From the NCBI RefSeq assembly GCF_030684315.1, contig NC_081396.1, forward strand, positions 5,332,001-5,396,000: a stretch of 64,000 nucleotides of DNA. Direction: 5' to 3'. The stretch comes from Stegostoma tigrinum. Taxonomy: Eukaryota. The notes under the pieces are model-generated. The model had not been told where the DNA came from and did no database searches. It was given only the letters and a program-made list of their open reading frames with translations. This document shows, in pieces, positions 1,689 to 64,000 of this stretch. A program made the translations under genes and the position numbers. Every line of letters starts with the position of its first letter. Position 1 is the first letter of the stretch.

Positions 1689-1972
1689 GCTCTTTCAGAG
1701 AGCCAGTGACAAAGACCCCAGCAGTGGCGAGCAAAAAGGAGTGTCAGACTCTCACCATCAATTAGGCTTACGGTGGTCACAACTGGAATTGTCATTTCAA
1801 AGATGGATATTTGCTCAGACAAACCCACACCAGGAATGGATCTCTAGTGGACGGAGATTTATTGTACGTAACAACAAAGATGGAAAGACATTTTTGCCGG
1901 AGGTTCAGGAAGTAAGAATTGAAAATATCGACACTTATTATGTAAAGCACAATACATTACAACTACGATAGA
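1689..1972 (+). pseudogene. NAR-TCR V exon pseudogene (IgNAR-like V, cassette 1)
   Basis: After the acceptor tttccag: SFREPVTKTPAVASKKECQTLTIN*AYGGHNWNCHFKDGYLLRQT / EWISSGRRFIVRNNKDGKTFLPEVQEVRIENIDTY(Y)CKAQY. It is collinear with the intact V at 60997-61292. Canonical Cys23 is TAG (1763-1765), there are two frameshifts, and the FR1 KECQ cysteine is kept. Confidence 0.9.
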
Positions 1973-2010
1973 CACAGTGATGGTCCAATACATCATGCAA
2001 TACAAAAGTT
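1973..2010 (+). other. Recombination signal sequence (22-bp spacer) of cassette-1 V
   Basis: CACAGTG (1973-1979), 22 nt, ACAAAAGTT (2002-2010). Confidence 0.88.
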
Positions 2011-2328
2011 CTCCCTCCAGATTTTACACAGAAATAAATGAAAAACTGGATTTACTCTACTCATTGAAAAAAGAAAACACATCGTTACATTCTGATACAT
2101 TCTGTTTTCTAATGTTACTGTCATATTGCTGTTAATGTCTGCAATTTCGAACAATCCAATTTTGTGTTGATTTTTTTTTCTTGAGATTGGAGTCTGTATG
2201 TAAATGTGGGGAATGATGAACGCCATTAAGAATCATGAACACAAATTGGGATCTAATTCTGGCAGCTGGAACCTGGCTACGTAGTCTCCTCTGTTTAATT
2301 ATTGTCTTCAAATCTCACCAATGCCTGA

Positions 2329-2399
2329 GGTTTCAATGTCGATTTGAAACAGCGATCAATTCTTGGGAATCTACAGTGCGGAAGACCGAAACAATTACC
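2329..2399 (+). pseudogene. Degenerate NAR-TCR D segment with 12-bp RSSs (core about 2357-2371)
   Basis: 3' RSS TACAGTG (2372-2378)-12-ACAATTACC (2391-2399). 5' RSS is decayed: GGTTTCAAT-12-CAGCGAT. It has a similar distance from V and the same upstream caaatctcacc landmark as the D at 61676-61691. Confidence 0.65.
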
Positions 2400-2699
2400 A
2401 TTGTGCCGTCCCAGATTGTGAAATACATTCTTCAGATTCCGTTTAATTTATGCAATTTTCTTTAGTTTGCAATTTTTGATCCTTTTCCAGTGATATTTTC
2501 CTCCATTGTCGTAAACCATCCATCTGTGATCTGTGTTCTTGAGTTACTTTGTTAAGATCTCAGACCCTCATAAATAACAGCCTGAGTCAACAGATCTGAG
2601 AAATATGGAATTAATTGATTGAAATATTTGTAATAATTAGAGGTAGAGCCGAAGAGTCGAGTGTCTTGCCACACGAGGCTGGCAAATTAAAATCTAAGT

Positions 2700-2792
2700 G
2701 GTTCTTTTTACTGGAGTGACTGACAGCGGTGCAATTTTGTCACAAATATGACATTGTGGGCACGTCAGGGACTGTGGTGTCTGTCATAGAAC
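2700..2792 (+). pseudogene. Degenerate NAR-TCR J segment (cassette 1) with RSS
   Basis: About 2740-2792 reads HKYDIVGTSGTVVSVIE, then a phase-1 donor GTACAT; compare YYDYVDGSGTVVTVTA at 62069. Nonamer GGTTCTTTT at 2700-2708; the heptamer is decayed. Confidence 0.7.
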
Positions 2793-3830: not shown

Positions 3831-4632
3831 AGCAGGCCAGAGGTTTGGAATTATGGAGTGATTAGCTCATTCATTTTCCTCCTACTGCCTGTCCACCACC
3901 CATTATCGGCAAGGCAGAAGTCAATAAGGTGATAGAACATAGTTCACTTTGGTGATGGGTCTAGCTCCAGCAGGACTCAAGAAGCCTGACACTGTTCAAA
4001 ATGAGGAATCCTAGTGATTGGTTCCCATCTACAATCTCCAATATTCACTAAAAACACCACTGATGCACTTTAGGAGCAGGGTGTTACAACTACAAAGTGC
4101 ATTCCAAGAACTCAGGAGGCCCCTTGAACAACATCTTCCCCTCCTGCGAACTCCATTGATCAGAAGGGCTCAGGCAGCCATACATATGAAGACAAACATA
4201 TCCAACCTCTCCTCCAAGTCACAGATCATCGTGGCTTAAAGCGGTTTTGTTCTTCACTGCTGCGGGGTCAGAAATTCTGAAATTCTGCTCCTGGCAGCTC
4301 TTTGGGTATCTTATGGGCATCATCAGTTAAAGAGGGCAGCTCGAGCAACTGCCTTCTTCATGGAAATAATTGCTAGCCTAAACAGTAGTAGCCAAATTCC
4401 GTGTTGTTCAGTTAATAAATTGGGAAAACTATCGGTTTTTATTTCAAATATGCATGCAGTAGTCTTCTGTTGCCTCTGCATCTTTAACTATGGTGACGCA
4501 GGATGAATGATCCTTTGAAGTCGTCATAAGCCAGTGGTGCCAGTTTTGTTTGTTTTTTTCATTCCATTTCACTGATTTAGTGAGAATAAAATTGGTGATC
4601 GATGCAAAAAGGCAGGCAGTTAATTATTGTGT

Positions 4633-4773
4633 CAGAGATAATGAGAACTGCAGATGGTGGAGAATCCGATTTAACAAAGTGTGGAGCTGGATGAACACAG
4701 CAGGCCCAAGCAGATTTTGTGCTCCTCAGATGCTGCTTGGCCTCCTGTGTTCATCCAGCTCAACACTTTGTTA
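4633..4773. mobile_element. Hairpin (inverted) Penelope-terminus element
   Basis: taacaaagtgtggagctggatgaacacagcaggcc...ggcctcctgtgttcatccagctcaacactttgtta is self-complementary and is the same sequence as the terminus at 13000-13078. Confidence 0.8.
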
Positions 4774-7994: not shown

Positions 7995-8318
7995 GTTGTT
8001 GAGGGTGAGGACGAGTTCTTCCTCACACCCATCCCTTCCTCCCCCATCAAGCTGCACCTCCATTTCCTACCTACCACCTCATCCCGCCTCCTTGACCTGT
8101 CCATCTTCCCTGGACTGACCTATCCCCTCCCTACCTCCCCACCTATACTCTCCTCTCTACCTATCTTGTTTTCTCTCCAACTTTGGTCCGCCTCCCCCCT
8201 CTCCCTATTTATTCCAGTTCCCTCTCCCCATCCCCTGTCTCGGCCCGAAACGTCAGCTTTTGTGCTCCTGAGATGCTGTTTGGCCTGCTGTGTTCATCCA
8301 GCTCCACACTTTGTTATC
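7995..8318 (+). mobile_element. Penelope-like element 3' tail/terminus fragment
   Basis: Pyrimidine-rich tail plus the terminus ggcccgaaacgtcagcttttgtgctcctgagatgct..., near-identical to 12730-13078. Confidence 0.85.
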
Positions 8319-8903
8319 CAGCAATAATACTGTTTGGCTGTCACTTCACCGTGTTTGCAAATGAAATCCTGCGCAGACTTATTGAAGGCAACTAAGAGGT
8401 TGAATTTGATACTCGTTACCCCTGTCAGTCTCAGACCCAGCGTGCTTATCAGAATGATTAAAGACCGAGACACTCTTTCAACGGCGATTTTATCACGTCA
8501 TTGCAATGAATAGTTCACTGCAAGACTGGATAATTCAAAATCACGAGACCAATTAAACCAAACAGGGAATTCCAGTAGCCAACTCGAAGATGTATTAGCA
8601 TATGAAGCAATGTTCCTTTCGGATTTGTACAGAAAGGATTAACTGAAATTGACATCTCGTTTTTAGGTTTTGTTTATTTATAAATCTGGAATAAATTGAC
8701 AAAAGGAAAAATTTAAAAACAATGATAATGAACTGTTTGTCGCATGTTATAAAAGCGGATTAGTATCGCTTATTGTAAATGACCTTTAAAATTTTGCTTT
8801 GGTCAAACAGTAGGAGAAGCTAATTATATTTGGGCTGCAACAGGGAATGAGTAAAAATTGAGATTCAACAGACGGCACGTTGTTGAACGGTTTGTAAAAC
8901 GTT

Positions 8904-11544: not shown

Positions 11545-13078
11545 TTTCAGAGATAGCAGGAACTGTAGATGCTGGAGTTGCTTACATGGAACAATCCCTC
11601 TTCCACCTCCACACTGGCCCTAAACACCACCTCTTCCTGTTACATTGATGACTGTATTGGCGCAACCTCGTGCTCCAAACGAGGATCTCGAACAGTTCAT
11701 CCACTTTACCAACACCTTCCACCCCAAGCTTAATTTCACCTGGACCATCTCCAATACCTCTCTCTCCTTCCTGGAGCTCTCGGTTTCCATCTCCAGCAAC
11801 CAACTAGAAACTGATATTCATTTCAAGCCCACTGACTCCTACAGATACCTAGAATATGCCTCCTTCCACCCACCTTCCTGCAAAAATTGCATCCCCTATT
11901 CCCAATTCCTTCACGACCGCCGGATGCGCTCCCAGGATGAGGCATTCCACTCCCGTACATCTCAATGTCCTCGTTTTTTGAAGAGCGCAACTTCCCCCAC
12001 TCAGTAGTGGAGAATGCCCTCGACCGTGTCTCCCACATTTCCTGCAACTCAGCCCTCATACCCCCTCCTCACAATAGAAAACCAAAACAGAATCCCCCAG
12101 TCCTCACGTACCACCCCACCAACCTCCAGATCCAACGCATCATCCTCTGACACTTCAACCATCTGCAACCTGACCCGAACACAAAACACATTTTTCCCTC
12201 TTCACCCTTATCTGCCTTCTGGTGGGACCACTCTCTCCATCATTCCCTTGTCCATTCCACACTCTCCTCCAAAGCCAACACAACCAGCACTTTTCCCTTC
12301 AACCGTACGAAGATCTGCACCTGCCCCTACACTTCCCCCCTCACCCCCACCCCAGGCTCAAAGAACACTTTCCACATCAAACAGATGTTCACCTGCACAT
12401 CTGCTAATGTGGTATACTGCACCCGTTGCGGTCTCGCCTACCTTGGGGAAACCAAGCAGAGGCGTGGGGATCACTTTGCAGAACACCTACGCTCGATTTG
12501 CACTAAACAACTGCACCTCCCAGTTGTGAACTATTTCAACTCCCCCTCCAATTCCGCAGATAATATATCCAACCTGGGCCTCCTGCAGTGTCGCAATGAT
12601 GCTACCCGAAGGTTGCAGGAACAGCAACTCATATTCCTCTTGGAAATCCTGCACCTAATGGTATCAATGTGGATTTCAGAAGCTTCAAAATCTCCCCTCC
12701 CCCGACCACATCCCAAAAACAGTCCAGCTCGTCCCACCCCCCTAACCTGTTTTTCCTCCCACCTCAATCCCATCCACATCTCCTACCTACCAATCTCATC
12801 CCGCCACCTTGACCTGCCCATCCTCCCTGGACTGCCCTGGCTCCTCCCTACCTTCCCACTTACATGCACCTTTAATGGCTCAATCCCTACCTCTTTGACC
12901 CGTCTGTCTCCTCTCCACCTGTATTCTCCTCTATCCATCTTCTATCTGTCTCTCCCTATTTATTTCAGAACTTCTGCCCCCTCTCCCATTTCTGAAAAAG
13001 GGTCTACGCCCGAAATGTCGGCTTTTCTGCTCCTATGATGCTGCTTGGCAGATTGTGTTCATCCAGCTCTTCACCTTG
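11545..13078 (+). mobile_element. Penelope-like retroelement (RT C-terminus plus GIY-YIG endonuclease), 5'-truncated, with 16-bp target-site duplication
   Basis: RT: YIDDCIG..FIHFTNTFHPKLNFTWTIS..LSFLELSVS..TDIHFKPTDS. Endonuclease: FTCTSANVVYCTRCGLAYLGETKQRRGDHFAEH. TGAACTCATAAACCTG flanks both ends (11529-11544 and 13079-13094). A short inverted terminus piece sits at the 5' end. Confidence 0.92.
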
Positions 13079-18612: not shown

Positions 18613-20640
18613 GAATAAATGGACACATTAGAAATGTGGAGCTTATTCAAGGAAAAGCCCCTGTGTGTCCTAGATAAGATAAGGCAGGGAGGAAGCTGTA
18701 AAGCTCGGGAGCCGTGTTTTACGAAGGGGTGGAATCTCTGGTCAAGAGGAAGAAGAAGGCTTATGTTAGGATGAGATGTGAAGGCTCAGTTAGGGCGCTT
18801 GAGGGCTACGCGGTAGCCAGGAAAGACCGAAAGAGAGAGCTCAGAACAGTCAGGAGGAGACTCGAGAAGTTGTTGGCGGATAGGATCACGGTAAACCCTA
18901 AGGCTTTCTATAGGTATTTAAGGAGTAAAAGAATGATGAAAGTAAGATTAGGGCCAATCAATGATAGTTGTGCTACGTTGTGTGTGGAGTGAGAGGAGAT
19001 AGGGGAAGCACTAAATGAATATTTTTCAACAGTATTCACTCTAGAAAACGACAATGTTGTCAAGGAGAATACTGAGATACAGGCTACTAGACTAGGTGGG
19101 ATTGAGGTTCACAAGGAAGAGGTATTAGAAATCCTACACAGGGTTAAATGCCTTTGGCATTGATCTTTAACTCGTCATTGTCTACAGGAATAGTGCCAGA
19201 TGACTGGAGGATAGCAAATGTGGTTCCCCTGTTCAAGAAGGGGAGTAGAGACAACCCCGGTAATTATAGACCAGTGAGCCTTACCTCAGTTGTTGGTAAA
19301 GTGTTGGAAAAGGTTATAAGGGATAGGATTTATCATCATCTAGAAAAGATTAAATTGATTAGGGAAAGTCAGCACGATTTTGTGAGGGGAAGGTTGTGCC
19401 TCACAAGCCTTATTGAGTTCTTCGAGAAGGTGACCAAACAGGTAGATGAGAGTAAACCGGTTGATGTGGTGTATATGGATTTCACCAAGGCGTTCGATAA
19501 GGTTCCCCACAGTAGGCAATTGTACAAAATGCGGAGGAATGGAATTGTGGGAGATATAGCAGTTTGGATCAGAAATTGGCTTGCTGAAAGAAGACAGAGT
19601 GTGGTAGTTGATGGGAAATGTTCATCCTGGAGACCAGTTACTAGTAGTGTACCGCAAGGGTCGGTGTTGGGTCCACTGCTGTTTGTCATTTTTATGAATG
19701 ACCTGGATGAGGACATAGAAGGATGGGTTAGTAAATTTGCAGACGACACTAAGGTCGGTGGAGTTATGGATAGTGATGAATGATGCTGTAGGTTGTAGAG
19801 AGACATAGATAAGCTGCAGACCTGGGCTGAGAGGTGGCAAATGGAGTTTAATGTAAACAAGTGTGAGGTGATGCACTTTGGTAGGAGTAACCAGAAGGAA
19901 AAGTACAGGGCTAATGGTAAGATTCTTAGTCGTGTAGATGAGCAGAGAGATCTCGGTGTCCATGTACACAGATCCTTGAAAGTTGCCACCCAGGTTGACA
20001 GGGCTGTTGAGAAGGCATACAGTGTTTTAGCTTTTATTAATAGAGGGATCGAGTTCTGGAACCAAGAGGTTATGGTGAAGCTGTACAAAACTCTGGTGCG
20101 GCCGCACTTGGAGTATTGTGTACAGTTCTGGTCACCGCATTATAAGAAGGATGTGGAAGCTTTGGAAAGGGTGCACAGGAGATTTACTAGGATGTTGCCT
20201 GGTATGGAGGGAAGGTCTTACGAGGAAAGTGGCTGAGGGACTTGAGGCTGCTTTCATTAGAGAGAAGAAGGTTGAGGGGTGACTTAATTGAAACACATAA
20301 AATAATCAGAGGGTTGGATAGGGTGGATGGGGGGAGCCTTTTTCCTAGGATGGTGACAACGAGCACGAGGGGGCATAGCTTTAAATTGAGGGGTGAAAAA
20401 TATAGGACAGATGTCAGAGATGGTTTCTTTACTCAGAGAGTAGTAAGGGAATGGAAGGCTTTGCCTGCAACGGTAGTAGATTCGCCAACTTTAGGTACAT
20501 TTTATTCGCCATTGGATAAGCATATGGGCGTACATGGAATAATGTCAGTTAAACGGGCTTGAGATCGGTATGACAGCTTGGCACAACATCGAGGGCCGAA
20601 GGGCCTGTACTGTGCCGTAATGTTCTATGTCTATGTCTAT
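18613..20640 (+). mobile_element. Young 5'-truncated CR1 LINE (ORF2 reverse transcriptase) with TATCAATG target-site duplication
   Basis: ORFs 19148-19783, 19841-20236 and 20242-20562 carry [40 protein letters not shown] and LVRPHLEYCVQFW. It ends in a (TCTATG)n tail. TATCAATG occurs at 18605-18612 and 20638-20645. Confidence 0.97.
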
Positions 20641-22120
20641 CAATGTATCATGCTCAATGTTACAACAATTCAAGTCATGAAGGTGGAGAAATTCAGAAAC
20701 TGTCGTGGTGAAATGAGGAACACGTTACCAGAGTGATTAGAGCACATTGTATTGAGTCATTCATGGAAAGATTTGACAACACAGAGATGAGAACAGAATA
20801 GACATACACAGTGTGCTGGATAGACAATTTAAATTAGGTTTCGTTCGAGGTCAGGCGTATTAATATATGCACGAGCATATCAGTTGGGATGAATAACCTG
20901 ATTCCTAACTTGATACTTCATGCAAACTTAAAAAGAAAAAGCCCACTCCCAGTGCACAGAAGTAAACGAATTGATTCAGAAATTGAAATTTAGGGAGAAC
21001 TGAAGGAGAGTTCCCAATCAGTAACAACAGTTCGACACCACCAACTCCCCCGCCCCCGACTCATCCCTCAAGAAATATTACAGGTTGAACACAATCTATG
21101 ACTGAGCTATGCTGGCGCAGATTACCAAGTCTGCAAAGAAAGAAAAAATGCACAAAGGAAAAGCAGAAAAGAAAACGATGTTACTCGGAAATATTTCACG
21201 TTGGTGGTAATCAGGAAAGAGACTCGATTTGGAAATGAAACATAATGTAGATGAAAAATCTGTTAGCATCTCCTTCAAAAACAAAAATGTAAATAAATGT
21301 ATATAGTTAAGTTAATGGTACTGCTCAAACACAGCATTTATTTTGGATTTTGCTGAGCACATTGATGCAACACAGTTAGATTACGATTGGGCAGTTATTT
21401 ATGGAAATTGATTATAAAGTGATAGATCCATGCGGCATGGAAACATGGCATTTCATCCAAATGGTCAGGGTAGACAAGGGATCGTAAACTGAAGTAGTCC
21501 CATTTCCCTGAGTTTGGCCCATATCCCTTGAAATATTTCTTATTTCTGTATTTGTCTAAATGTCTTTTAAATGTTTTAACTGTACCTGTATCTAATACGT
21601 CCTCCAGCAATTCATTTCATATCTCTTTCCCGTTTCACCGTAAGTCTGTGCTTTTCAGCTTTCAAAGTTAGTATAATGTGTTCCCTCGGATTTGTCTATC
21701 AACAGAATAAATAGAAACAGAAATAAAACTTACATCACAGAGCATACATGATAGCATTCAGTGCCACGTGTGGTTACTGTTCTCTTCAGGGTTCTTTGCA
21801 ACTATTCCCATGGTACATGTCTTCTCCCCAGAACGCTGTATTTTCTGCTTGATTCTGCTGCCGTTGATTACCTATTTGAAATTACTGCTGAAACAGTTTC
21901 GACCATCAGTTTTGACAATGTATTCCACATTTTAAGAAATAAAAACATAAAAGAAAATGTCACTTCAGTGCCTCATTGGTTCATATTTCAATAAGAGAAA
22001 ATAGATTCAAATTGACTACTAACAATTTGAATTGTCTCAAAACAGAACAGTTTTGGTGATTTACAATTTCTCCATGTAACAGAGGCTGGATAAGTAATAA
22101 TGTTGCATATCATCTCACAG

Positions 22121-22431
22121 ATTCCAATTCACTGGGGTCCCAGACTCCACCTCTACAAACCTCTGCTGCGGGTGACACCAATACTTTAAGCTGTGATTAT
22201 CCATGGTTCTGTCAGTAAACAATTTACTGGTACAGTCAGTCATCAGGACAAGCTCCGAAATACCTCCTTCAAAGAAACACATCAGAAAGAGCAGAGTGAA
22301 GAGACTGCTTCTGGAGTACGAGCTTCTGCTTCTATTGATCCTTGGACTGAAATAGATCAGTTAATTATCTCTCGAATACCAGTCAGTGATTCTGCTGTTT
22401 ATTACTGTGCACGGAGTCGGCGCTCAGCACA
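22121..22431 (+). pseudogene. Supporting TCR-delta V (leaderless partner V of NAR-TCR), pseudogene
   Basis: After the acceptor ctcacag, phase 1: DSNSLGSQTPPLQTSAAGDTNTLSCDYPWFCQ*TIYWYSQSSGQAPKYLLQRNTS / EQSEETASGVRASASIDPWTEIDQLIISRIPVSDSAVYYCARSRRSA. It has the diagnostic extra Cys in CDR1, a TAA at 22216-22218 and a +1 frameshift near 22285. No leader exon was seen upstream, and its phase matches the J donor at 17412. Confidence 0.92.
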
Positions 22432-22592
22432 CTCAGTGATACAGTGCACGGAGAGAAATATACAAAAACCTGAACATGGTGGGGATTACCAACACGGCGA
22501 TACAGAGCTGGAATTCAGCTGTACAAAAACCAAAACACGGTGGGGAATACTGACACCGTGATACAGAGCTGGGGAAAAGCTGGTTAAAAAAA
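22432..22592 (+). repeat. Three tandem 23-RSSs at a 61-bp period with D-delta-like inter-RSS cores
   Basis: CTCAGTG(22432)-23-ACAAAAACC(22462); CACGGCG(22493)-23-ACAAAAACC(22523); CACCGTG(22554)-23-TTAAAAAAA(22584). The 22-nt linkers are tgaacatggtggggattaccaa and aaaacacggtggggaatactga. Confidence 0.85.
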
Positions 22593-22596
22593 AACT

Positions 22597-22805
22597 TCAG
22601 AGATAGTAGGAACTGCAGCTGCTGGAGAATCTGAGAAAACGAAATGTAGAGCTGGATAAACACAGCAGACCAAGCAGCATCAGAGGAACAGGAAAGCTGA
22701 CGTTTCGGGCCTAGACCCTTCTTCAGAAATGGGGGGTGGGAAGGGGATTCTGAAATAAATAGGGAGAGAGGGGGACGTGGATAGAAAACGGATAAAGGAG
22801 AGAGA
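22597..22805 (-). mobile_element. Penelope-like element terminus
   Basis: gagatagtaggaactgcagctgctggagaatc...gctgacgtttcgggcctagacccttc is the reverse complement of the family terminus at 12950-13078. It begins immediately after the third RSS. Confidence 0.85.
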
Positions 22806-32412: not shown

Positions 32413-32451
32413 AGTTTTTGAATGGGGTCAGCCCAGTTCTGAATCTCTGTG
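32413..32451 (-). other. 23-RSS of the minus-strand TCR alpha/delta V
   Basis: Minus strand CACAGAG-23-TCAAAAACT. Confidence 0.9.
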
Positions 32452-32758
32452 GGGTTCAGTGCACAGTGATACATCGCGGAGTCTGTAAGTTCTGTGTTCA
32501 ACACTTTCAGGTGGATAGTCCGGTTCACATGATCAAACTCTGAGGAAAACCTGTCTCCTGGATGTCTCTCTGTTTCCTTGATATATTGGTTTCTCTTCAG
32601 CACATACTCCATGGAGCCACTGGAATGCTTCCGGTACCAGAACAAGTAAGCACTGCTGCTTGATGTAGTTGTGTAATTACAGAATAACACGACATCTTCC
32701 CCTTCATTCACTGTGATTGCAGCCGGTGTTTGTGAGACAGAATCTGCACGACAAAGTC
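32452..32758 (-). CDS. TCR alpha/delta variable segment, V exon (open frame, apparently functional)
   Basis: After the acceptor ttacag, phase 1: GLCRADSVSQTPAAITVNEGEDVVLFCNYTTTSSSAYLFWYRKHSSGSMEYVLKRNQYIKETERHPGDRFSSEFDHVNRTIHLKVLNTELTDSAMYHCALNP. Cys23, Trp41 and Cys104 are present and a 23-RSS follows. Confidence 0.95.
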
Positions 32759-50274: not shown

Positions 50275-50436
50275 NNNNNNNNNNNNNNNNNNNNNNNNNN
50301 NNNNNNNNNNNNNNNNNNNNNNNNNNNNNNNNNNNNNNNNNNNNNNNNNNNNNNNNNNNNNNNNNNNNNNNNNNNNNNNNNNNNNNNNNNNNNNNNNNNN
50401 NNNNNNNNNNNNNNNNNNNNNNNNNNNNNNNNNNNN
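50275..50436. other. Assembly gap
   Basis: Run of N. Confidence 1.
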
Positions 50437-51455: not shown

Positions 51456-51593
51456 NNNNNNNNNNNNNNNNNNNNNNNNNNNNNNNNNNNNNNNNNNNNN
51501 NNNNNNNNNNNNNNNNNNNNNNNNNNNNNNNNNNNNNNNNNNNNNNNNNNNNNNNNNNNNNNNNNNNNNNNNNNNNNNNNNNNNNNNNNNNNN
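51456..51593. other. Assembly gap
   Basis: Run of N next to a CA/GA-rich tract. Confidence 1.
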
Positions 51594-51945: not shown

Positions 51946-52066
51946 TTAAAACTAGTCCCGAAACGTCAGCTTTTGTGCTCCTGAGATGCTGCTTGGCCTG
52001 CTGTGTTCATCCAGCCTCACATTTTATTATCTTGGATTCTCCAGCATCTGCAGTTCCTATTATATC
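51946..52066 (+). mobile_element. Penelope-terminus insertion with 14-bp target-site duplication
   Basis: TCACTCTACAGGTT at 51932-51945 and 52067-52080. Confidence 0.88.
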
Positions 52067-53338
52067 TCACTCTACAGGTTATCCTGTCTTTCCTCATTAT
52101 TCCTATCGAACTTGAAATGAACGCGTGAGAATAAGAGAAGTAGAAATATTCACAGAAAATGGAAAGTAATTCTTGAGCCAATTAAGCATTAAATTTAAAA
52201 ACAAAAAAAAGCAGCTGTACCCTATGAGGGTCATATTCGGGTGATAGGTTTGGGAACATCCACTAATTACATATTTTGTTCAATCACAGGTCAACTGGAC
52301 AAACAATAACTGCTTCTGGACATGAAGTTAACAGTGAAGGGAATAGCGCCAAATGCAACCAATTGACAACTCTCAATTTTCAACAACCTCGAGCACTTTC
52401 AATGTGAATATAGATTCACTATACGTACTGTTTGCAGAAGTATACCTAGACCTTCCTGTGTAAGCTAAATAGAGCTTCGTACAGCAGCAGCAAACCTTTC
52501 CCTCTTTGCTTTCACAGCCTGTACAACAGGCCGCACTATGTGGGAAATTACATTGAAGATAGACTGCTAAAAATGAAGGCATATTTGATGTGAAAAAGTT
52601 TATACTGGACATCAAATTTGAAATCATCTATATAAAAAAGAATAGATTCATCGAGTTATAGAGCATAAAAACAGGCCCTTCAGCTCAATTCGGTTATGCA
52701 GACTATGTATCAAAAACTGATTAAGCCCCTTTTAACAGCAGTTGAACCATATCCCGTTAATCCCTTCCCATTCATGTTACCATCCAAATGGCTTTTAAAT
52801 GTTGTGATTGTACACGCCTCCACCATTTTCTCTGACAACTCATTCCTTTCATGCATCATTCACCCAACGTTATTATCTTATATTTTATTATTTCAGAAAC
52901 AGTACCAAAGTGCAAGACTACAAGCCTTGATTTTAATCGATATGGATTCGCTGTTCATTAACACTAATTCTGCGTCTGCACTGCAAGAACTCCTGTCCAT
53001 GCCCGGATCTTTAGCGATAGGATCATGAACAGTGCATTCTTGACTTGACTATGCACCATAGGTATTGAGAGGGGCGCATGCACAATGGGGTTGCACCACC
53101 TACAGGATTGTGGTAATTTGGTCCCAGTCAACTATGAAAGAAAGCAAAACGTACGAGGGTCGTTGGAGTTGGCAGAGTGAGTGGGGAGATTTCCTCAACA
53201 ACGACTGCAGTACAAAAACCCAGAATTAGGCACTCATATCCGGCATTGTGAGTCAATTAGACAGAAACTGCGAGGCTGCATGTCTTGGTGCCAAGCCGAA
53301 GTAAGGGTTGCTATCTTTGTTGGAGCATGAGGGGACAG

Positions 53339-60822: not shown

Positions 60823-60865
60823 ATGGAAACCCTTATTGTTTTAATCCTGTGCGTCTGTTTACCCT
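60823..60865 (+). CDS. Leader exon of NAR-TCR V (cassette 3)
   Basis: ATG...CCC T|GTGAGT = METLIVLILCVCLP, phase 1, then a 131-bp intron to ttacag at 60996. Confidence 0.92.
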
Positions 60866-60996
60866 GTGAGTACCGATCATAGAAATCAACATTGTGTGGA
60901 TTTAAAACTATACTGCTGCCCGAGTTCATCAGAATTTTAATCGCGTTGTGTGGGTCATTGATAATACCCACTCACCTCTCTCTGTTTAATTTACAG

Positions 60997-61292
60997 GTTC
61001 ATTCAGTCAGTCAGTGACACAAAGTCCAACAAGAGTGACAAGGAAGGAATGTCAATCTCTCACAATCACCTGTGTTTTTAATGATTACCATTTTTTTTAT
61101 ACCTATCATTTTGAGAGTGGTCAATTCTTCAGACAAATACAGGGAATGAAGGAATGGGAGCGGATCTCCGGCAGTGGGAGATTTATTATGTCCACAAATA
61201 AAGCAGAAAAGACATTTTCGTTGGAAATTCGGGACGTCACGGTTAAAGACGCCGCGACCTATTACTGTAAAGCTCGGTACTGGTATGACATA
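60997..61292 (+). CDS. NAR-TCR V exon (IgNAR-like V domain), open frame
   Basis: SFSQSVTQSPTRVTRKECQSLTITCVFNDYHFFYTYHFESGQFFRQIQGMKEWERISGSGRFIMSTNKAEKTFSLEIRDVTVKDAATYYCKARYWYDI. It is a short V lacking CDR2 (NAR-type ExISxxGRF..KxFSLxIxDxTVxD) with an extra FR1 Cys. Confidence 0.95.
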
Positions 61293-61330
61293 CACAGTGA
61301 TAGGCTTTAGCTTCTCGCTGTTCAAAAAAC
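61293..61330 (+). other. RSS (22/23-bp spacer) of cassette-3 V
   Basis: CACAGTG (61293-61299), 22 nt, TCAAAAAAC; or 23 nt, CAAAAAACT. Confidence 0.9.
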
Positions 61331-61647
61331 TCTCTCTGGAGATTACTACAGAAACAAATTGAAAACCGAGTGAATCTGCTGGAAGTGCACATAGTTCTGC
61401 TTCACAGCTTCTGACTCACAGTCCAGTTTGTAAGTCGACAGCATTATTGTCAACAATATCTTGATTTTCACAGATGACGAGTGTGTTCAGATGGTGATGT
61501 CTTTTTCAAGATTGACATGGGCGAATGGAAGATCAGAAAGACTGATCAAAGTTAAAGGACATTGATGCGAGTTGTGATCCTGTTCCGCAAAATGAAATTT
61601 GGAAGTTCAGTCCATCTGTGAAGTCCCAAATCTCACCTAGTCCAGGG

Positions 61648-61719
61648 ATGTTTTACACATACTTGTAATGCTGTGTAATTTGGAGACAAGGCACAGTTAA
61701 AGGACCCCTACCAAATACC
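61648..61719 (+). other. NAR-TCR D segment (core 61676-61691 TAATTTGGAGACAAGG) with 12-bp RSSs
   Basis: 5' ATGTTTTAC-12-TGCTGTG; 3' CACAGTT-12-CCAAATACC. It lies midway between V and J. Confidence 0.8.
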
Positions 61720-62029
61720 TCTGCCAAATAAAATATAAGATCTCCAGCCCAATAGCCAATAGCCAGCTTGGAGTTCCCTTCGCTGCAGCATGGGTTGATC
61801 TTTTGACTATCCAACAGCCATTAATTTCATTGACTGATTTTTCTCCCCTTATATGAAGTGAAAGTCGGCACCCCCGTGCTCTGTCATCATTTGACATTAA
61901 AAAATCAGTGGTGAACTTGACACAAAGAAAACGTGGAGACAGCGAATGTTGATACTTATATAAGTATCCTGAATAATTGGATTGATAAAGCAGTGTGTTA
62001 ATGATTTCTCAACACTTTGACATCCCATT

Positions 62030-62118
62030 GGTTCTTGTTCAGGGGAAGCTGAGAGGAGCACTACTGTGATATTATGACTATGTAGATGGATCCGGAACGG
62101 TGGTGACTGTCACAGCTG
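62030..62118 (+). other. NAR-TCR J segment (coding 62069-62118) with 23-RSS
   Basis: GGTTCTTGT-23-TACTGTG, then YYDYVDGSGTVVTVTA followed by a G|GTAAGT phase-1 donor. Confidence 0.93.
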
Positions 62119-63929: not shown

Positions 63930-64000
63930 TTGGAGATAACAAGGTGTAGATCTGGATGAACACAATAGGCCAAGCAGCATCAGAGGAGCAGGAAGGCTGA
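63930..64000 (-). mobile_element. Penelope-like terminus running off the window
   Basis: gagataacaaggtgtagatctggatgaacacaataggccaagcagcatcagaggagcaggaaggctga, as at 22630-22700. Confidence 0.85.

Follow-up and report, generated by a model that had tools for sequence, protein, structure and literature searches.

In the 64-kb window of zebra shark (Stegostoma tigrinum) DNA analyzed here, a supporting V-delta pseudogene of a NAR-TCR (22120..22431, + strand) is followed directly by an array of 23-RSSs. The V exon is preceded by the splice acceptor tctcacag (22113..22119, +) and the boundary reads cag|GAT TCC at 22119/22120, no leader part being present in the exon, and its CDR1 contains an additional cysteine (SCDYPWFCQ*TIYWY). 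Lack of a leader and a cysteine in CDR1 are hallmarks of supporting V-delta segments (PMC1845163). Kinship with this V class was also evident from matches to about 60 NAR-TCR models of a dozen species: the three pieces of the V showed 80-96% identity to P0006 (LOC109920193) of Rhincodon (whale shark), a gene model that joins NAR V-J by splicing to a supporting V. In this model, splicing places DSNSL, identical to the first residues here, immediately after the end of the NAR J. The exon ends with YYCARSRRSAH, the coding end being CARSRRSAH. About 60 supporting-V models share this conserved long coding end (C-A-L/R-S-R-R-S/T-A) and, therefore, SRRSAH is germline V sequence and the first heptamer is correctly placed; a germline-joined D as the source of SRRSAH was rejected on the same ground. 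As originally predicted, this V copy is a pseudogene: CDR1 contains a stop (TAA at 22216-22218), and a surplus A in the run 22286-22288 shifts the frame by +1 before FR3. One paralogous contig lacks one base at 22289, and the whale-shark counterpart is in a single frame throughout.

The supporting-V coding end was found to be 4 nt longer in orectolobiforms (P0006, P0008, P0037), with the heptamer at nt 26 from the Cys codon as compared to nt 22 elsewhere (P0014, P0017, P0028 and about 30 others). Outside the orectolobiforms the heptamer is read CAG TGA, i.e., as a stop, whereas in orectolobiforms it is read ACA GTG and the frame runs on into the array.

The supporting V lies downstream, and on the same strand, of the remnant of a NAR-TCR cassette (1691..2790, +) consisting of a broken V and a J-like segment. 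The NAR V pseudogene (about 1691-1972) carries in-frame stops and is followed by CACAGTG at 1973 with a 22-nt spacer (22/23-RSS); the J-like sequence GTSGTVVSV is found near 2750-2790. This cassette, 19 kb upstream, is presumed to have been paired with the dead supporting V. The gap between the two holds retroelement DNA, namely a decayed element with reverse-transcriptase ORFs at 19148-20562 (+; Pfam RVT_1, E 2e-27) that are split over three frames. An apparently intact NAR-TCR leader-V-D-J cassette with a V-set domain is located at 60823-62118 (+), and its supporting V, together with any array that follows it, must lie beyond the end of the window. A conventional TCR alpha/delta-type V at 32463-32681 (- strand), ending in MYHCALNP, is followed by an RSS at 32451 (CACAGAG..TCAAAAACT). 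Behind this V there is a single 23-RSS, and behind each of the two NAR Vs a single RSS; the conventional V served as a control within the window, and no second unit was present behind 32681 (-). N runs are present at 50275-50436 and 51456-51593.

On its distal side the array is bordered by a dispersed repeat (about 22596..22781, strand not assigned), which starts 4 nt after the third nonamer and the end of which is given by the extent matched by other copies. Ten further partial copies occur in the window on both strands, e.g., at 4632-4713, 8237-8321, 12949-13070, 51952-52067 and 63933-64000. A Penelope terminus had been proposed to abut the third RSS; a dispersed repeat is indeed present there, but its identity as Penelope was not supported, and two Rfam searches, the wider of which spanned the first 5' repeat copy, detected neither a hammerhead nor any other Rfam family.

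Structure of the 23-RSS Array

The array consists of three head-to-tail 23-RSS units on the + strand, with starts at 22432, 22493 and 22554 and thus a spacing of exactly 61 nt. RSS1 (22432..22470, +) is the V's own 23-RSS and is composed of the heptamer CTCAGTG, a 23-nt spacer beginning with ATACAG and the nonamer ACAAAAACC at 22462-22470. It is followed by linker 1 (22471..22492, +), which comprises TGAA, the heptamer-like CATGGTG and the 11-nt core GGGATTACCAA. RSS2 (22493..22531, +) has the heptamer CACGGCG (5/7, CAC kept), again a 23-nt spacer from ATACAG, and ACAAAAACC at 22523-22531, and is followed by linker 2 (22532..22553, +) with AAAA, CACGGTG and the 11-nt core GGGAATACTGA. RSS3 (22554..22592, +), with the heptamer CACCGTG (6/7), a 23-nt spacer from ATACAG and the nonamer TTAAAAAAA at 22584-22592, has no linker 3' of it. 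The 61-nt unit is hence a 23-RSS (7 + 23 + 9 nt) plus a 22-nt flank with CAYGGTG and a G-rich core. The CACGGTG of linker 2 is the exact inverted repeat of the RSS3 heptamer CACCGTG, and CAYGGTGGGGAWTAC occurs only twice in the 64 kb, in the two linkers. The heptamers, spacers, nonamers and linker elements listed in the original prediction, as well as the broken V-proximal heptamer and the CAC retained in RSS2 and RSS3, were all found in the sequence.

The periodicity was supported by Tandem Repeats Finder (22461-22582, period 61, 2.0 copies, 78% matches, score 153) and by self-comparison at a lag of 61, in which 48/61 positions were identical as compared to a maximum of 33 in 200 shuffles (binomial P about 3e-16). 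Furthermore, a 517-nt contig of a public run is identical to 22101-22600 with zero differences, and the array is therefore not an assembly slip; this contig may derive from the sample that was used for the assembly.

With respect to function, all three spacers are 23 nt long, within the 23 ± 1 nt of functional 23-RSSs, and A-rich nonamers near ACAAAAACC are present, with scores of 9/9, 9/9 and 5/9 for RSS1, RSS2 and RSS3, respectively. The first three letters of the heptamer, CAC, are the part needed for RAG cleavage. They are absent from RSS1 (position 2, A>T) and present in RSS2 and RSS3. Since two paralogous contigs have A at 22433, and thus CACAGTG, the CTC is a lesion of this copy, in which the RSS1 heptamer is dead. 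A D-delta segment is made up of a 5' 12-RSS, a short G-rich core and a 3' 23-RSS. RSS2 and RSS3 indeed lie directly 3' of the two cores, but no 5' nonamer was detected for the D-like cores, the best match to GGTTTTTGT at a spacing of 11-13 or 22-24 nt being 3/9. The frame from the Cys codon at 22406, which had been predicted to remain open through both repeats, is open until a TGA at 22559-22561.

The V end TACTGTGCACGGAG (22403-22416) recurs with 13/14 identical positions within the RSS1 spacer (22440-22453). Local duplication was considered as the source of this likeness and rejected: the spacer motif ATACAG(T/A)GCAYGGAGA is common to this copy, one paralogue and an ENA contig that resembles Mustelus, as described below. 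The spacer of this supporting V class is therefore conserved, and it is oddly similar to the V's own end.

Recurrence in Paralogues and Other Species

Two paralogous contigs could be aligned at 85-89% identity from the V end via RSS1 and linker 1 into RSS2, up to 22507 and 22511, respectively. Moreover, a paralogous loose end at 22432 contains RSS1 with the spacer motif of this copy, and another at 22489 contains a D-like core followed by a further heptamer-like CAGAGTG.

Across species the evidence is at the peptide level, where the tails of gene models represent the translation of the DNA behind the V until the first stop. The models were found by a HMMER search of the whole protein library with the FR3 and array frame, followed by a word search with P0006; a word-based search for protein homologues with the FR3 and array frame of this copy gave no candidate. 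Tails were scored by the fewest mismatches of any back-translation to CACAGTG, ACAAAAACC and the linker motif CATGGTGGGGAT, so that the mismatch counts are lower bounds. In shuffle nulls, a heptamer with at most one mismatch was obtained in 10.6%, a nonamer with at most one mismatch in 1.3% and the linker motif with at most two mismatches in 0.6% of cases.

In Rhincodon, RSS-compatible offsets of 26 and 87 nt from the Cys codon were found; RSS1 can be back-translated to a perfect heptamer and nonamer, and the nonamer of unit 2 has 0 mismatches. The whale-shark tail ends in PTQ-stop at the position matching RSS3, as would be expected if a third heptamer were read ..CAG TGA in the way it is in this copy. 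The three-heptamer geometry of this dead copy matches that of its whale-shark counterpart. Several paralogues of Hemiscyllium (epaulette shark) showed offsets of 26/87/146 and 26/86, and offsets of 26 and 89 were found in Stegostoma itself, while the Chiloscyllium models end within unit 1, with RSS1 alone visible. Outside the orectolobiforms, one unit and a second heptamer were found in Pristiophorus (sawshark; offsets 22 and 85, linker motif with 0 mismatches) and in Pristis (sawfish; offsets 22 and 83), both models ending before the second nonamer; the sawfish case is weaker and only probable. The longest array was detected in an ENA contig, the V of which is 90% identical to that of Mustelus (hereafter the Mustelus-like contig): five units at offsets 22/83/144/205/266, with an exact 61-nt period, 0 heptamer mismatches and 0-1 nonamer mismatches by back-translation. 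In Rhincodon, Hemiscyllium, Pristiophorus and the Mustelus-like contig, the tails were compatible with the linker motif CATGGTGGGGAT at 0-2 mismatches.

Lamniform, heterodontiform and most carcharhiniform models end at the first heptamer (GCA CAG TGA) and are uninformative on arrays. The white-shark models P0036 and P0066 pass the heptamer and show no RSS-compatible period; the scan missed even their first signal. Two metagenome scans, one for a double perfect RSS and one for an RSS with linker, yielded no matches. P0013, an 813-aa ORF of a 34-kb ENA contig, was tried as a candidate and rejected, as it holds an unrelated tandem repeat of 59 aa (177 nt) with no nonamer-compatible sites. Its translation mimics the CTER..PEHGG.Y.H of the array frame.

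Taken together, a head-to-tail unit that recurs every 61 nt (every 60 nt in one copy), linker included, is found behind supporting Vs of several shark orders, and the array is present behind the supporting Vs of many sharks and, probably, of a sawfish. Since it occurs in paralogous contigs and in other species, it is not private to this copy; uniqueness to the dead copy was an outcome that the original prediction had named as speaking against itself. It had likewise named stops in the read-through frame of functional paralogues; the frame closes early in most paralogues, and only 4 of the 18 orectolobiform models are open to RSS3.

Distal Signals, Reading Frame and Expressed Chains

The V-proximal signal is the copy that stays near consensus. 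A perfect heptamer is possible for RSS1 in 8/13 orectolobiform models, and at most one mismatch is found in 13/13, whereas the second heptamer has at least one mismatch in all models but one. In 7/8 orectolobiform gene models the second heptamer falls on a Gln or Tyr codon with which CAC is impossible; RSS2 of the window keeps CAC.

In 30/39 non-orectolobiform germline models the V frame is closed by a stop in the first heptamer (GCA CAG TGA), and among the 18 orectolobiform models it stops within unit 1 in eight. Besides the Mustelus-like contig, five long non-orectolobiform tails were found, which read into sequence that is not part of an array. In the Mustelus-like contig no stop interrupts the frame over five units, and in the whale-shark counterpart and here it is open over two; these examples were noticed because they are open, and the window and the whale shark represent one orthologous case. 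The extra cysteine of each unit is replaced by serine at both positions in the whale-shark counterpart.

The few expressed chains that are visible join at the V-proximal RSS. The cDNA-type NAR-TCR proteins P0050 and P0085, old UniParc entries with adjacent numbers that are probably the original nurse-shark clones, join right behind the germline V end and have CDR3s of ordinary length, and the transcript-like V-J-C models P0052, P0067, P0082 and P0092 likewise join there and have ordinary CDR3s. No public run catalogued as RNA contains the stretch, and three small contig sets gave no alignment to it, which does not point to silence of the locus. The D-like core was found in the CDR3s of 0/6 expressed or V-J-C sequences, a very small sample, and the expressed set is a handful of chains, none of them from a repertoire data set. 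No protein combining V, array, J and C was among the matches of the whole-library search.

Origin and Possible Role of the Array

We consider it probable, with moderate confidence, that the array of the window is a decayed and shortened member of an old RSS minisatellite that lies behind the NAR-TCR supporting V-delta in elasmobranchs, the distal units of which hitch-hike. The array comprises at least two head-to-tail 23-RSS units with a period of about 61 nt, the first being the V's own signal, and it recurs with a matching linker. Such arrays would arise and be renewed by tandem duplication or unequal exchange of the 61-nt unit; RSS1 alone would be under selection as the working signal, and the distal copies would ride along, drift and often lose the CAC needed by RAG. 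A duplication of the V's signal together with its 22-nt flank fits the resemblance of the distal spacers to the V's own spacer, which is seen also in the Mustelus-like contig. Nothing functional is left in this window: a stop and a frameshift interrupt the V, the RSS1 heptamer begins with CTC, and the partner NAR V is broken as well. As a counterpoint, selection, instead of slow neutral drift and homogenization, could account for a unit that is conserved across shark orders and, probably, in batoids. The Mustelus-like array retains five consensus-compatible signals, and a TGA after the nonamer is missing where it would be in frame (here, in the whale shark and in the Mustelus-like contig), all three having been noticed as open. 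The conserved linker of different orders and the five clean units of a single species thus allow for a selected role, and the hitch-hiking reading is an inference.

The hitch-hiking explanation has to be weighed against readings in which the repeated signals are used. RAG might use the distal 23-RSSs in living cassettes as spare signals, either as additional sites of attachment, by which the supporting V is captured more readily, or by cutting the distal signals first, so that the proximal RSSs are kept and the V can be re-joined to a downstream D/J; re-joining would be useful since the NAR-TCR chain needs two productive joins in cis. This is unlikely in our view. The array is confined to the supporting V among the Vs of this window, is old and widespread, and reaches five consensus-compatible units in the Mustelus-like contig; its distal nonamers are often intact where the heptamers are not (9/9 in RSS2, 0 mismatches in unit 2 of Rhincodon), and all units are oriented as the V's own signal, so that the 12/23 rule would permit pairing with the 12-RSS of D-delta or J-delta. 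Against such use, CAC is lost from the distal heptamers in most orectolobiform copies, RSS-derived residues were seen in none of the expressed sequences, the whole-library matches included no protein with V, array, J and C, and distal cuts would mostly yield joints that contain stops. That the tandem 23-RSSs of intact cassettes are a selected multi-signal device appears quite unlikely. In such a device RAG would come from the D-J side and encounter the distal signals before the proximal ones, so that a V joined there could be joined again, or the additional nonamers would improve RAG capture; if true, NAR-TCR chains, for which two in-frame joins on a single chromosome are required, would be obtained at a higher yield. 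The proposal from which this analysis started, in which RAG chooses among stacked signals and the retained units are translated, so that about 0, 20 or 40 germline residues are added to the CDR3, is very improbable. It would gain from the open frame, which extends over two units in this copy and its whale-shark counterpart and over five in the Mustelus-like contig, but these examples came to notice through being open, and the proposal is disfavored by the stop at the first heptamer in 30/39 non-orectolobiform models or within unit 1 in 8/18 orectolobiform models, by the extra cysteine that is not conserved, and by the expressed chains, which join at RSS1 and have ordinary CDR3s.

Two further readings concern the source of the array. 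The linker and the next RSS may descend from a D-delta-like segment that lost its 5' spacer and nonamer, an improbable origin that would be compatible with hitch-hiking of the distal units. Each core lies between inverted heptamers, with CACGGTG and CACCGTG as exact inverted repeats, the linker is conserved across orders, and the core GGTGGGGA(T/A)TAC appears similar to GGGATAC, the core of vertebrate D-delta. Conversely, a 5' nonamer is found at neither 12 nor 23 nt, the preceding nonamer being just 4 nt upstream, the core is present in no CDR3 of the expressed chains seen, and the distal spacers resemble the spacer of the V's own RSS, in paralogues and in the Mustelus-like contig, which fits duplication of signal and flank. 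The related suggestion of V-private D segments devoid of their 5' nonamers was correct as to anatomy (best nonamer 3/9), but the 12/23 rule bars units of this kind, which have no 5' spacer and nonamer, from functioning as D segments. Finally, one might suspect an artefact of the assembly, or a neutral duplication that occurs in this dead copy alone, given that the V is a pseudogene and that a dispersed repeat begins 4 nt past the array; yet the identical public-run contig, the whale-shark counterpart with its matching three-heptamer geometry and the arrays in paralogues and other species make this next to impossible.

A V class with signal arrays across sharks and, probably, rays amounts to a natural experiment on how RAG chooses among adjacent signals of like orientation, and on the speed at which an unused signal decays. 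Used distal signals would constitute a new way for one V to obtain several rearrangement tries; unused ones would serve as an internal neutral reference against which selection on heptamer, spacer and nonamer can be measured. The copy in this window stands at the dead end of such a series, with the V, RSS1 and the partner NAR V all broken and 4 nt separating the array from a dispersed repeat.

Comparison With Known Systems

To our knowledge, RSSs are normally single and their number per segment is not treated as a variable, and we know of no such tandem-RSS arrangement for other V classes. No description of tandem RSSs behind a V was found in the literature searched; this search was incomplete and the novelty is therefore provisional. 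The canonical 23-RSS of a V resembles RSS1 in that it directly adjoins the V coding end, faces D/J and consists of a heptamer, a 23-nt spacer and an A-rich nonamer, but it is single, whereas here the signal and its 22-nt flank are repeated (three units, and at least five in another shark). The array resembles TCR D-delta in having a 23-RSS behind a short G-rich core that is enclosed by inverted heptamers; the array units, however, have no 5' spacer and nonamer and begin 4 nt behind the previous nonamer. Cryptic or embedded RSSs, as in VH replacement and receptor editing, likewise place extra RAG signals near a V and in principle allow a second try, but they are single, heptamer-only sites inside the V coding end, in contrast to the full tandem copies outside the V described here, the use of which is putative. 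An ordinary minisatellite shares with the array the head-to-tail arrangement, the fixed period, a copy number that varies between paralogues and decay away from the selected copy; the array differs from it in that its unit is a signal of a functional class and in its association with a single class of V in different orders. Thus, none of these known systems combines full tandem signals with a tie to a single V class.
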